Shown here one piece after another: positions 7,304 through 12,819 of a stretch of DNA of 40,694 nucleotides (the first letter of the stretch is position 1; every line of letters starts with the position of its first letter). The stretch comes from Octopus bimaculoides (taxonomy: Eukaryota). The stretch covers positions 141,412,752 through 141,453,445 of the forward strand of contig NC_068983.1 in NCBI RefSeq assembly GCF_001194135.2. Direction: 5' to 3'. The position numbers and the translations under genes were made by a program. The notes beneath the pieces are model-generated. The model worked only from the letters and a program-made list of their open reading frames with translations, did no database searches and was not told where the DNA came from.

Positions 7304-8066
7304 NNNNNNNNNNNNNNNNNNNNNNNNNNNNNNNNNNNNNNNNNNNNNNNNNNNNNNNNNNNNNNNNNNNNNNNNNNNNNNNNNNNNNNNNNNNNNNNNN
7401 NNNNNNNNNNNNNNNNNNNNNNNNNNNNNNNNNNNNNNNNNNNNNNNNNNNNNNNNNNNNNNNNNNNNNNNNNNNNNNNNNNNNNNNNNNNNNNNNNNNN
7501 NNNTATATATATAAAATTGAACTTTTAAATAAATATTGAAATCACTGATATCTGAAATAACAGAGACACATAAAAATTGTTGTAGAGTAATATGTCTCCT
7601 GAGTACAGTTTCACGGTGAATGTGCTCAGTTGTTATTTTCAAAGCTTATAATAACTAGAAAACATTCTAATATATATGCTATCTCATAGAAATTATATTC
7701 AGTATGGCAATGGAGATACTAGCATGCATGTAACCTGTGGTCATTACTTACATTCATAAATTCATAATTTCATTCATACGATACATAGTTATATATATTT
7801 GCGGACATAAAGTTTATGTCCACAAGTTTATAAAATATATATGTAAATATTATTAAAACATTTAAAATAAAAATTGCGTAACTGAAACGCATGAAACACA
7901 CAGCATAAATCATTATTAAAATATTGGGGAAATATACTCAAGTATTCAAATATGCAATTATTACAATATTCATAATCTGGAATAAACGAATAAAATCATA
8001 TATATGTAATACGAAATGTTTAATGACATGGAACTAATCTATCTTATTTTTACTTTTCATTTCAAG

Positions 8067-8087
8067 TCCCAGTACCAACAACGTCAA
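8067..8087 (+). CDS. 21-nt phase-1 microexon (x-P-V-P-T-T-S), linker before VWA1
   Basis: ttttacttttcatttcaAG|tcccagtaccaacaacgtcaa|GTAAGT, with a branch-like aCTAAT about 30 nt upstream. Length is 3n and it joins in frame to the VWA exon at 11403 (A+AT=Asn). Paralogous context at 12592 and 22114. No transcript evidence available. Confidence 0.75.
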
Positions 8088-8249
8088 GTAAGTATCTGCC
8101 AACTAGTTACTGCACTATCAGTGAATAAGCGTTTCTATTTATATTTTGATTGTTCTTACAATTATCAGTCCAACCGACTAGATATTATGGACGTTAAACA
8201 GGAATTCCCTTTACTGATTCCACTCCTTCTTCTACACATTTTACAAATG

Positions 8250-8297
<48 letters not shown>

Positions 8298-8559
8298 CAC
8301 TACTACCACCACCGCCACCACTACTACGACGACGACGATAATGACGACGACAACTACTACTACTATAGACTTATAGACACCAGTTAAACTATTGGGAAAT
8401 AATATATATTTCTTTTTTATATTGTTATTATTTGAACCTTTATTTAATGGTTTGCTGAGTGAATTCTACGCATCTTATTCCGATAAGTTTTCTTCCAATC
8501 AAACTTAAAAAGAAGTAAATCCACTTGAATTCCAGGACTTTCGCTTCATGGCATATTTT

Positions 8560-8729
8560 GCTGTAGCTAATCGGTTAAGGTAACCGGCTTACGACCGTAC
8601 GAACGTGAGTTCGATTCTCGGCGACCATTTGTGTCCTTAAGCAAGGCATTTATTTCAAATTTGCAAAAATGAGTTGTGCCTGTGATTCAAAGGGCCAGCT
8701 TTGTCACATTTTCTGTCACACTGAATCTC
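8560..8729 (+). mobile_element. tRNA-derived SINE (5' part, runs into gap)
   Basis: tagctaatcggttaagg (A box), gagttcgattctc (B box), ttgtgtccttaagcaaggca central motif; duplicated at 13079. Confidence 0.75.
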
Positions 8730-9330
8730 NNNNNNNNNNNNNNNNNNNNNNNNNNNNNNNNNNNNNNNNNNNNNNNNNNNNNNNNNNNNNNNNNNNNNNN
8801 NNNNNNNNNNNNNNNNNNNNNNNNNNNNNNNNNNNNNNNNNNNNNNNNNNNNNNNNNNNNNNNNNNNNNNNNNNNNNNNNNNNNNNNNNNNNNNNNNNNN
8901 NNNNNNNNNNNNNNNNNNNNNNNNNNNNNNNNNNNNNNNNNNNNNNNNNNNNNNNNNNNNNNNNNNNNNNNNNNNNNNNNNNNNNNNNNNNNNNNNNNNN
9001 NNNNNNNNNNNNNNNNNNNNNNNNNNNNNNNNNNNNNNNNNNNNNNNNNNNNNNNNNNNNNNNNNNNNNNNNNNNNNNNNNNNNNNNNNNNNNNNNNNNN
9101 NNNNNNNNNNNNNNNNNNNNNNNNNNNNNNNNNNNNNNNNNNNNNNNNNNNNNNNNNNNNNNNNNNNNNNNNNNNNNNNNNNNNNNNNNNNNNNNNNNNN
9201 NNNNNNNNNNNNNNNNNNNNNNNNNNNNNNNNNNNNNNNNNNNNNNNNNNNNNNNNNNNNNNNNNNNNNNNNNNNNNNNNNNNNNNNNNNNNNNNNNNNN
9301 NNNTATATATATACATATATATATATATAT

Positions 9331-9685
9331 GGAGGCGCAATGGCCCAGTGGTTAGGGCAGCGATTTCACGGTCATAGGATCGCGGTTTCGATTCCCAGAC
9401 CGGGCGTTGTGAGTGTTTATTGAGCGAAAACACCTAAAGCTCCACTAGGCTCCGGCAGGGGATGGTGTTGCACCCTGCTGTACTCTTCCAACACAACTTT
9501 CTCTTACTTCCTGATTCTGTTGTGCCTGTATGTCAAACGGTCAGCCTCGTCACACTGTCTCACGCTGAATGTCCTCGAGAACTACGTTAACGGTACACGT
9601 GTCTGTGGAGTGTTCAGCTACTTGCACGTTAATTTCACGAGCAGGCAACTGGAACCTTCGACGTCGTAAGCCACGGATTGCCAAT
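9331..9685 (+). mobile_element. tRNA-derived SINE, near full length
   Basis: ggaggcgcaaTGGCCCAGTGGttagg (A box) ... GGTTTCGATTCCc (B box); body matches the minus-strand copy at 2420-2795. Confidence 0.9.
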
Positions 9686-11402
9686 GTATATATATATACA
9701 TATATATATATATAAGCAACAGGATTTCAATTAGTAATGCAGTATGACCAATTCAAGCGGATCCATTTAATTGATCAATGCAATCATTACATCAATTTAG
9801 ATACTGTGCTATCTTGAGCTGCACAAAAAAATATGGGACTTCAACCAGTACGATAAGTTAATATATTTTTTCTTAAATATTTTAACAGAGCAAGAAGACG
9901 GAAGAAATTCATGTTGTCGCTATTGTAGCAAGAATGGCTAAGAAAACAGATTACAATTTCTTTGAATAGCACGGAACACAGTGGGGTCATAGGATTGTAA
10001 TCTATTTCCAGTTTATTTATCTCATTATCATCTACTAAAATTTGAGACTAGAAGACTGTGCATATTTAGGATAAAGAGCAAAAGTGAGTTGACAGCGCAT
10101 GGCTAGCTATTGGTCATAAATATAGTCATAGGTACCACTTCACCCATAAGAACAAAGAAACAAAACTTTAGAAAAAGTAAATTATATAGAAGTAATTGTC
10201 CATAAAAAAGAGGTAGGGTAGGTTTGACTTTAATTCATGATGTTATTACCAGGTAAATGGGCAAAGCACAATGAAATTTAAGATGCTATAATGNNNNNNN
10301 NNNNNNNNNNNNNNNNNNNNNNNNNNNNNNNNNNNNNNNNNNNNNNNNNNNNNNNNNNNNNNNNNNNNNNNNNNNNNNNNNNNNNNNNNNNNNNNNNNNN
10401 NNNNNNNNNNNNNNNNNNNNNNNNNNNNNNNNNNNNNNNNNNNNNNNNNNNNNNNNNNNNNNNNNNNNNNNNNNNNNNNNNNNNNNNNNNNNNNNNNNNN
10501 NNNNNNNNNNNNNNNNNNNNNNNNNNNNNNNNNNNNNNNNNNNNNNNNNNNNNNNNNNNNNNNNNNNNNNNNNNNNNNNNNNNNNNNNNNNNNNNNNNNN
10601 NNNNNNNNNNNNNNNNNNNNNNNNNNNNNNNNNNNNNNNNNNNNNNNNNNNNNNNNNNNNNNNNNNNNNNNNNNNNNNNNNNNNNNNNNNNNNNNNNNNN
10701 NNNNNNNNNNNNNNNNNNNNNNNNNNNNNNNNNNNNNNNNNNNNNNNNNNNNNNNNNNNNTATATATATATATATATATATATATGCGTGTATATATGCA
10801 TATATACATATACACAAATATATATACGCTTGTATAAAAGAATATAGCATAAATATTTTGCATAAACATAAGTAACTGAAAAATATTAATCTAAGAACAA
10901 GAAAAATAACAATTTATAAAGGGTAAAAGATTTATTAGGTAAGCATACAAAGATAAGAAAACAAAATAATATGAATTTATAGAAAATAATAAGAAACACA
11001 TATAAAATACATATAAAGAGACAGGGGATTAAAATTAAAAGCATGAAAAGATTAAGGTAACCTAAATAAGGAAGCAATAGCTATGGAAGTAATGAGGGCA
11101 GTTAAAAGCATTCAGGTCTTTTGTAGCTGTGATATATCGTGTACCAGACATTCTTGTAAAGACGTACAGTTTTATTAGTTCGATGATCAGAAAAATAAAG
11201 CGAAATCTCGATATATTTCGTTCATCTAAATTTGAATTATATTGTGATTGTTTTCAACCCTATAAAACTTTCAAGGAACATATCTAAGGTAAAAATATCG
11301 AAGCGACAAGTATAATATATTAAGTATGTGACATCGAAAATGTTTTTCTCTTCGGTATTCTATTCTTGCGAGGTTTCTTAGACATTTTCCTTCTTTTTGC
11401 AG

Positions 11403-11969
11403 ATTGTAATAATGCAGTTGCTGATGTTATGCTCGTTTTGGATGATTCTGGCAGTGTTGGATCTAAGAACGTCGCGAAAGTGAAAAGTTTTGCACAAAAT
11501 ATAGTGAAATCCCTTAACATTGGTAGAAACAAAATTCGTGTAGGAGCCATTACATTCAGCTGGAAGGTCAAATCGCAGTTTCCGCTGAAAAGGCATTATA
11601 ACAAGAAGAATCTACTCAAGGCAATCAATAAAATAGGGTACCGAAAAGGAGGAACGAATACACATTTAGCTCTTAATTACTTGAGGAAAAATTCATTCAC
11701 TCGAAGGGCAGGGGATAGAAAACGTGTCCCGAACATTGCTATCATAATAACTGATGGCAAATCGAATATCCTCAGTAAAACTAAAAAAGCAGCATTGGAA
11801 TTACGAAAAAGTGGCACCATTGTGTTTGCTATCGGAGTTGGCAAAGGAATTAGACAGTCTGAATTGAAAATTATTGGTAGTTCACCAAGCCGAGATCATG
11901 TGTTCGCAGTTAAAAACTTTAACGTTCTTAATTCCATTGTGAAGCAATTGGCTAAAAGAACTTGTAATG
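11403..11969 (+). CDS. Exon encoding a complete von Willebrand factor type A (VWA) domain, phase 1-1
   Basis: tttttgcAG|attgt... to ...acttgtaatg|GTATGT; 567 nt, open frame. Translation CNNAVADVMLVLDDSGSVG...GGTNT...IIITDG...FAIGVG...KRTCN shows an intact MIDAS (DxSxS, T, D) and terminal Cys pair typical of matrilin/collagen VI-type VWA domains. Confidence 0.95.
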
Positions 11970-12591
11970 GTATGTATAAAATTTTGTATCTGAACATTGT
12001 AGAATTTATAATTATCTTTGATGCTGAAAGCGGCGTAGATTTCAAAGCAGTAATAGTGTAAGAACTGCTTTAGTTTCAGAATCATGCTGTAAAAGAAAAC
12101 TAACTGTGAATTATTGAATTAGTATATAATTAAAATGTAATAAATTATTGAATAATGTAATAACGCGTAATTATTTTGAAAAGGCATTAAAATGTTCTTT
12201 GGTGTCGTGTTAAGTAGCTGAAATGAGTTCAAAGTTTTAAATTAATCTATCCAAAAGACGATAAACTCATACATTTTCAAATTTATAATAGTTACATTTT
12301 CACACTTAAAATAGTGTACTGTTTTAACGGCCGACAAAATTGAATGGTCTGATTCTCAGTACATTAGATTCAGATTTTAGGAAATTCTAATTAGTTATAA
12401 ATATATGTAAATATTATTAAAACATTTTTGACACACACAACATAAATCACTATTAAAATATTTGGGAAATATACTTATGCAATTATTACAATATTCATCA
12501 TCTGGAATAAACGAATAAAATCATATATATGTAATACGAAATGTTTAATGACATGGAACTAATTTATCTTATTTTTACTTTTCCTTTCAAG

Positions 12592-12612
12592 TCCGAAAAC
12601 CACCAGCGCCAA
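12592..12612 (+). CDS. 21-nt phase-1 microexon (V-R-K-P-P-A-P)
   Basis: ttttcctttcaAG|tccgaaaaccaccagcgccaa|GTAAGT with aCTAAT upstream; in frame after VWA1 (G+TC=Val). Confidence 0.8.
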
Positions 12613-12773
12613 GTAAGTATCTGCCGACTTGTTACTGCACTATCAGTGAATAAGCGTTTCTATTTATATTTTGATAGTTCTTACAATTATCAGTCCAACC
12701 GACTAGATATTATGGACGTTAAACAGGAATTCCCTTACTGATTCCACTCCTTCGTCTACACATTTTACAAATG

Positions 12774-12819
<46 letters not shown>

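Follow-up and report, generated by a model that had tools for sequence, protein, structure and literature searches.

A divergent pair of candidate linker microexons in a duplicated von Willebrand-type module of Octopus bimaculoides

Several described systems resemble the locus discussed here. Single-exon VWA modules with phase 1 boundaries at both ends (phase 1-1) are found in the N-terminal domains of collagen VI alpha-3, in matrilins and in von Willebrand factor. The exons of venom toxin genes, such as those of snake phospholipase A2 and the conotoxins, are accelerated and their introns conserved. Splice acceptors can also occur as tandem alternatives of the NAGNAG type. A further comparison is with the micro-exon genes (MEGs) of schistosomes (2010, Genome Res 20:1112, as cited in PMC4350168; Philippsen et al. 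2015, PMC4350168). The coding region of these genes is made up mostly of symmetric microexons and evolves fast, and the products are secreted. Here we describe two 21-nt segments, A and B, in a stretch of 40,694 nt from the octopus Octopus bimaculoides (NC_068983.1, positions 141,412,752 to 141,453,445, forward strand; hereafter the window). They are putative microexons on either side of a VWA exon in what appears to be a modular von Willebrand-type gene, and they differ from each other about seven times more than the duplicated sequence around them.

The octopus VWA domain resembles the modules of collagen VI, the matrilins and von Willebrand factor in that it lies in one phase 1-1 exon of about 570 nt and in that its module has undergone tandem duplication. 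The VWD and TIL-like exons downstream of VWA recall von Willebrand factor, and the VWA-EGF units of a related locus recall the matrilins. Unlike those genes, however, the octopus gene would take its interdomain linkers from separate exons of 12-21 nt. Of the VWD-C8-TIL series of von Willebrand factor, a C8 domain was not seen in the window, where the gene is only partly visible owing to gaps (many of them at 24-31 kb).

Like the MEGs, the octopus locus would combine symmetric microexons whose lengths are multiples of three with a product predicted to be secreted and fast-evolving coding sequence, and the inclusion or skipping of its microexons could possibly generate variation. Unlike the MEGs, it is dominated by large VWA, VWD and TIL-like exons, and the only MEG-like stretch in the window is a three-module cluster at 37.2-39.2 kb. 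The octopus pair shows no sign of sustained acceleration, and it comes from an unrelated organism with no host-parasite interface. As in toxin genes, recent paralogues differ more in a putative coding segment than in the introns on either side of it, by changes that are non-synonymous. In toxins, however, the acceleration extends over many codons, paralogues and species, whereas here it concerns one pair and seven codons, is absent from older pairs, and affects a linker instead of the functional surface of a folded domain. Finally, copy A would resemble a NAGNAG-type site in having two in-frame acceptors, AAG and CAG, for an exon of 21 or 15 nt, but these are 6 nt apart and not 3. Separate linker microexons would be a variation on the phase 1-1 VWA theme. 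The excess of exon over intron divergence has well-known precedents in toxins and MEGs, but the recurrence across many codons and copies that defines those systems was not seen here.

Divergence of segments A and B

Segments A and B each occur once in the window. Both are bounded by an AG acceptor with a pyrimidine tract (...ttatttttacttttcNtttcaag) and by a GTAAGTATCTGCC donor. The preliminary description of this DNA reported that they differ at 6 of 21 nt, and our alignment confirms this, with the differences at exon positions 4, 6, 7, 12, 15 and 18 (window positions 8070, 8072, 8073, 8078, 8081 and 8084). Its counts for the flanks also held: 2 of 51 nt differ upstream and 4 of 164 aligned nt downstream, where there is also one 1-nt indel (about 5 in 165 had been given). 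As a background we took all duplicated A/B blocks, minus the exon and an (ACT)n microsatellite, and found 47 differences in 1186 nt (3.96%). Relative to this background the exon has diverged about 7-fold, rather than the nearly tenfold first claimed. The excess of exon over intron, tested as had been proposed, was borne out (Fisher p = 1.8e-4; binomial p = 1.3e-4, with the exon fixed beforehand), and a comparison of the exon with its near flanks gave a similar value (Fisher p = 1.6e-4). Neutral drift would be expected to produce 0.8 changes in the exon; six were seen. CpG decay was rejected as their cause because none of the six, as read from the sequence, is a CpG transition.

The frame assumed at the outset agrees with the frame set by the neighbouring exons, as both ends of the VWA exon are in phase 1 and so is the start of the VWD exon at 23638. 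Placed between such exons, a 21-nt exon can be read in only one way, in the case of A as g/tc cca gta cca aca acg tca a/at (slashes mark splice boundaries), and the predicted products are V-PVPTTS-N for A and V-RKPPAP-N for B. In this imposed frame all six changes are non-synonymous (chance p = 0.094) and none falls on a third codon position (p = 0.088). It had been argued that such frame-consistent substitutions support translation. We found that the pattern is not significant (p ~0.09) and that the microsatellite downstream of A has the same period-3 mismatches. Thus, the substitution pattern alone is no proof of translation.

Three of the six differences (8070, 8072 and 8073) make or destroy a candidate in-frame acceptor, as A has CAG/T where B has GAA/A. 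The first acceptor of A is the AAG at 8064-8066, and the CAG lies 6 nt beyond it. As this second acceptor is present only in A, copy A could yield an exon of either 21 or 15 nt, whereas B could yield only the 21-nt form. The other three differences can be polarised with the help of two further members of a microexon-like family, C and G, which are described below. Both share the state of B at exon positions 12, 15 and 18; copy A is therefore the derived one there, and its changes (cca to aca, gcg to acg and cca to tca) would have turned PPAP into PTTS.

Older pairs within the family do not show the same excess. The exons of B and C are 80% identical and their flanks 80-85% identical, and the interiors of B and G have 3 mismatches in 20 (15/17 in the stretch before the donor). 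A and C share 60-67% of exon positions against 75-85% in the flanks, the A interior matches every other copy at only 9-12 of 17 positions, and no near match to it (within 3 mismatches) was found elsewhere in the window. The view that hypervariability is a general property of this exon was not sustained, since the B-C exon is no faster than its flanks and the B-G interior is well conserved. The excess between A and B has the look of one burst of change that fell mainly on copy A, and such a one-off burst is more likely than sustained hypervariability.

The microexon-like family, the host gene and the duplicated unit

The window holds seven microexon-like modules (A-G), all of them on the strand of the gene (Table 1); D, E, F and G were found by profile searches. 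The best conserved columns are the branch site, the pyrimidine tract and the GTRAGT donor, while the interiors differ from one another in sequence and range from 6 to 21 bases. Segments A, B and C share a branch-like CTAAT about 30 nt upstream, with no AG between it and the acceptor. Their tracts are 76-84% pyrimidine, their acceptors are AAG or CAG, and all have a GTAAGTAT donor. Copy C, which keeps a branch-like AACTAAT, the pyrimidine tract and the donor, differs by an in-frame indel of 6 nt. The AG-to-donor distances of 21 nt or less are all multiples of 3 (21, 21, 15, 15, 12, 15 and 6). When both strands of the window were scanned for an AG acceptor with at least 68% pyrimidines, followed after 6-30 nt by GTRAGT, the plus strand contained only A, B and C and the minus strand two unrelated configurations. 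As the lengths are multiples of three and the phases 1-1, inclusion or skipping of such a microexon keeps the frame. We consider it somewhat more likely than not that the putative microexons A, B and C are spliced into at least some transcripts.

Modules G, E and F lie inside 2 kb (37183-39200), with two gaps and no visible domain exon between them, and could be consecutive microexons. An (ACT)n-type microsatellite follows 5 of the 7 modules at a distance of about 80-180 nt (8253-8370, 12777-12870, 18710-18763, 22240-22284 and 38046-38129), and therefore belongs to the duplicated unit.

We also looked for the family beyond the window. A protein database search with the microexon-VWA-microexon product and with a VWA-linker-VWA peptide returned only one octopus model and exon-sized matches of about 50% identity. 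An exact pattern of the conserved flanks had 0 matches in JGI metagenome contigs. In two related loci (L001 and L002, ENA ERZ21867824) no microexon module was matched by nucleotide or profile searches. Only the coding exons of these loci align, so they are too distant to test the conservation of the microexons. Their junctions are all in phase 1, and L001, which is gap-free, has the same phase-1 VWA and VWD boundaries as the octopus gene. Both loci contain near-identical tandem units: a VWA exon and a VWD exon in L001 (10022-12560 and 17577-19600, period ~7 kb), and a VWA exon and an EGF exon in L002 (3111-5120 and 10001-12012, period 6,892 nt).

The window is heavily gapped, with 32 N runs in the 40.7-kb scaffold. 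The reading frame at 11324-12058 holds a VWA domain (PF00092, E = 1.6e-49; 168.9 bits, cut-off 23.8). The metal-site residues (DxSxS, T and D) are in place and can be read from the sequence in the motifs DDSGS, GGTNT and TDG. The VWA exon begins with 2 bases of a split codon (ag/at tgt aat...) and ends with 1 (...tgt aat g/gtatgt). Since exons resembling VWA, VWD and TIL lie on one strand, the host gene appears to encode a secreted, modular von Willebrand-type protein, visible only as fragments. The VWD exon at 23638 could come in frame after microexon C.

The VWA frame is 99% identical to XP_014769910.1, which is annotated as 'collagen alpha-1(XIV) chain-like'. Despite this name, no collagen repeat or FN3 domain was found in the window. 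The final 30 residues of the model are a read-through of the GT donor at 11969 into the intron (11969-12058; GMYKILYLNIVEF...), and its 30-residue signal-peptide start was absent from the readable window in tblastn and short-peptide searches. The model is probably truncated by gaps. Secretion of the gene product is predicted from the signal peptide of this annotated model. When the VWD exon was used as a query in protein databases, no annotated octopus product was matched. A literature search on the accession returned nothing.

The duplicated module spans about 4.6 kb and would consist of a linker microexon, an intron and the single-exon VWA domain. Copies A and B align in three colinear blocks. 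The first has 51 mismatches in 853 aligned bases, exon and microsatellite included. With these two left out, divergence is even, at 2.4-5.2% per segment. The three blocks have similar values (2.4-4.7%), which fits one duplication event. Indels of 27 nt and 12 nt separate the copies. Homology ends at 11114/15020, beyond which copy B continues into weak GIY-YIG (Penelope-like) sequence.

Repeated elements are present around the module. The frame at 15494-16105 on the minus strand has a sub-cut-off GIY-YIG match (20.6 bits) and a long run of Asn, Asp and Ser, and may belong to a Penelope-like retroelement. SINE-like repeats that begin with a tRNA-like head and share 67-86% identity lie at 2424-2798 (minus strand), 9328-9684 and 13082-13361 (both plus) and 35211-35479. 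One such copy is common to A and B, and thus predates the duplication. Within 7400-13500, ARAGORN called no intact tRNA, and no known RNA family exceeded the threshold, Rfam giving only a weak tRNA-like match at 13101-13145. Farther away, frames at 20059-20781 (plus strand) have a weak zf-RVT match and are probably the tail of a non-LTR retrotransposon, and an inverted repeat pair (19598-19875 and 40328-40610, 76% identical) is spaced about 20 kb apart.

Table 1. Coordinates of the putative microexons, domain exons and duplicated blocks in the window
Feature	Position	Strand	Basis
Putative microexon A, 21 nt, tcccagtaccaacaacgtcaa, phase 1 reading (V)PVPTTS(N)	8067..8087	+	splice signals, frame
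Candidate second acceptor CAG, copy A only; its use would shorten the exon to 15 nt (8073-8087), (V)PTTS(N)	8070..8072	+	aligns with the acceptor of copy C
Putative microexon B, 21 nt, tccgaaaaccaccagcgccaa, phase 1 reading (V)RKPPAP(N)	12592..12612	+	splice signals, frame
Putative microexon C, 15 nt, tgccaccagtgctaa, reading (V)PPVL	22114..22128	+	flanks ~85% identical upstream, 75-80% downstream, to A and B
Module D, older member, donor 18609; interior of 6 nt from the sole AG beyond the branch-like site	18508..18632	+	profile match
Module E, donor 37968; sole AG leaves a 6-nt interior	37858..38002	+	profile match
Microexon-like interior F, 15 nt, taacaacagttaaag, reading (V)TTVK	39147..39161	+	profile match
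Microexon-like interior G, 12 nt, caccagcaccaa, reading (A)PAP	37279..37290	+	17 nt before the donor match B at 15/17
VWA domain, single exon (~570 nt), between A and B	11403..11969	+	PF00092; phase 1 at both ends
Start of second VWA exon (VWA_C), truncated by gap 21885-21984	21800..21884	+	24/27 aligned residues as in first VWA exon
First VWD-domain exon	23638..23891	+	PF00094, E = 7.5e-15, 56 bits; phase 1 start
Second VWD exon, C-terminal part of the domain	27763-27965	+	GICGDCNG motif; E = 6e-7, 30.3 bits
Cys-rich TIL-like exon	32440-32640	+	TIL, 22.8 bits, slightly under Pfam cut-off
Cys-rich TILa-like exon	33640-33825	+	TILa, 21.5 bits, slightly under Pfam cut-off
Intronic (ACT/ACC/ACG)n microsatellite, 170 nt downstream of A	8253..8370	+	17/112 mismatches to B, nearly all 3-spaced
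Copy A, first block: microexon A, splice flanks, (ACT)n microsatellite, start of SINE-like repeat	7828..8729	+	aligns to 12395-13248
Copy B, first block	12395..13248	+	alignment to 7828-8729
Copy A, further intron blocks 10169-10293 and 10770-11114, split by gap 10294-10760	10169..11114	+	97.6% and 94.2% identical to B
Copy B, intron blocks 14094-14218 and 14680-15020	14094..15020	+	counterparts of the copy A blocks

Weighing the explanations

We tentatively favour the explanation that A and B are linker microexons, that copy A diverged in function after the duplication, and that its acceptor changed as well. The splicing of the segments into mRNA, the direction of the changes and their functional effect are all deduced from the genomic sequence. 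Several points weigh against this explanation. A scan that allows any 21-nt window of the alignment to reach six mismatches gives p = 0.046. Neutral drift cannot make an exon outpace its introns, so a loosely constrained linker alone is insufficient for a 7-fold excess. The polarisation at exon positions 4, 6 and 7 varies with the placement of the 6-nt gap in copy C. In modules D and E the sole usable acceptor leaves 6 nt, and XP_014769910.1 omits the microexons, joining an off-window signal-peptide exon straight to the VWA exon. Lastly, the second VWA exon expected after copy B was not seen in the window; it may lie in the gap at 16470-17156 or have been lost.

One alternative is a mosaic history produced by non-allelic gene conversion, in which either the flanks were homogenised or co-duplicated around older interiors, or a short tract overwrote one interior. 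The exon would then be older than its flanks and not faster evolving. Such a history could account for the conflict between the exon and flank trees, as the B interior is nearer to G (3 differences in 20) than to A (6 in 20) though the A and B flanks are 96% identical. If the gap in C is set before CAGT, the A, B and C interiors become equidistant (12/18 each). Both states are found again among the other family members at three of the six sites, and no fewer than seven copies within 40 kb could have served as donors. However, recurrent change within a 17-nt stretch of low complexity can also create shared states, and none of the copies in the window comes close enough to the A interior to have been its donor. 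Conversion requires flanking homology, and the flanks of G are far too diverged for this; a tract of about 17 nt would be unusually short. Moreover, divergence is even along the blocks, without the identity tracts typical of recent conversion. On balance, we consider conversion unlikely.

It is also rather doubtful, in our opinion, that the segments are not exons at all but belong to an intronic repeat family with splice-like signals, the 21-nt patch being a fast-mutating, cryptic (ACC/AAC/AGC)n-like triplet stretch. The scan-corrected significance, the annotated product without microexons and the two of seven modules without a normal acceptor all speak for such a family. The same could be said of the microsatellite that follows five modules, which itself diverges by 15% with the same 3-spaced mismatches, and of exon positions 12, 15 and 18, which are exactly 3 apart. 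A family of this kind would not, however, need to have all seven modules on the strand of the gene, AG-to-donor distances that are always multiples of 3, or phases that agree with those of the neighbouring exons. The branch site, pyrimidine tract and donor are best conserved while the interior varies, runs of two triplet units are poor substrates for slippage, and strong microexon-like configurations are otherwise nearly absent from the window.

A broader interpretation treats A and B as part of a family of cassettes, each a symmetric microexon of 6-21 nt with conserved splicing flanks and a free interior; the window would hold at least seven of them, three within 2 kb. Inclusion, skipping or the choice of acceptor would then give linkers of variable charge or glycosylation. 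We regard this as a distinctly unlikely extension.

That the linker has been under sustained positive selection for diversity, of the kind seen in venom toxins, gamete-recognition proteins and the schistosome MEGs, seems very improbable to us. It would explain why 6/6 changes are non-synonymous over about 15 non-synonymous sites when the introns differ by 4% (Fisher p = 2e-5), and why the charge of the linker goes from +2 to 0 with the addition of three hydroxyl residues. The product, judged by its annotated signal peptide, is secreted, and there are precedents in the MEGs (PMC4350168). Yet the data are a single pair with six changes, none of them at the roughly 7 synonymous sites, and this is too little to show positive selection; the value for all changes being non-synonymous is p = 0.09. 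Three of the changes coincide with the gain or loss of an acceptor, and the older pairs B-C and B-G have no exon excess.

The assembly itself deserves attention. Copy A occupies a 1,226-nt contig (7504-8729) that is flanked by gaps at either end, and it is scaffolding that places it in tandem with B. The scaffold has 32 gaps, and elsewhere in it two copies of a 277-nt stretch, 100% identical, stand on either side of a gap of 10 N (3550-3826 and 3837-4113). They almost certainly arose in assembly or gap closing, and indicate that the scaffold contains artefacts. The gaps at 8730-9303 and 10294-10760 miss both exons and the compared flanks, which are continuous at 7504-8729 and 10761-13410. That copy A is a mis-scaffolded alternative haplotype of B, or that one consensus is a chimera of several paralogues, is highly improbable, given that a divergence of about 4% with indels of 27 and 12 nt far exceeds the heterozygosity expected in this species, that the contig of copy A opens with 324 nt to which nothing upstream of copy B corresponds, that three colinear blocks are similarly diverged and the 467-N gap at 10294-10760 corresponds to 461 nt in B (14219-14679), and that the contig at 10761-13410 physically joins the duplicated block, the VWA exon and microexon B.

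A proposed history of the linker

Based on these results, we propose a model for the linker microexons and the divergence of copy A. The 21-nt segments would be paralogous, symmetric (phase 1-1) linker microexons in a recent tandem duplication, each adding about seven residues between domains. Selection across the seven members may hold only the splicing signals and the frame, leaving the interior as a loosely constrained linker. After the duplication, a burst of change mostly on A would have replaced Pro/Ala codons with Thr, Thr and Ser. The difference between CAG/T and GAA/A may have shifted both the first residues of the linker (PV or RK) and the available acceptor. The outcome would be a neutral Pro/Thr/Ser linker in A, possibly O-glycosylated, and a basic, Pro-rich linker in B.

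At present the finding amounts to a single small case from a draft assembly with gaps, and it is not evidence for a new mechanism. It points to candidate exons that have been overlooked by automated annotation in a cephalopod genome. If the cassette family proves to be real, it would be a variation system like that of the micro-exon genes, but outside the flatworms. If the microexons are spliced in, tandem duplication would let a modular extracellular protein alter the charge, proline content and O-glycosylation sites of a linker, by way of a few substitutions and a shifted acceptor, while the exons encoding its domains stay conserved.

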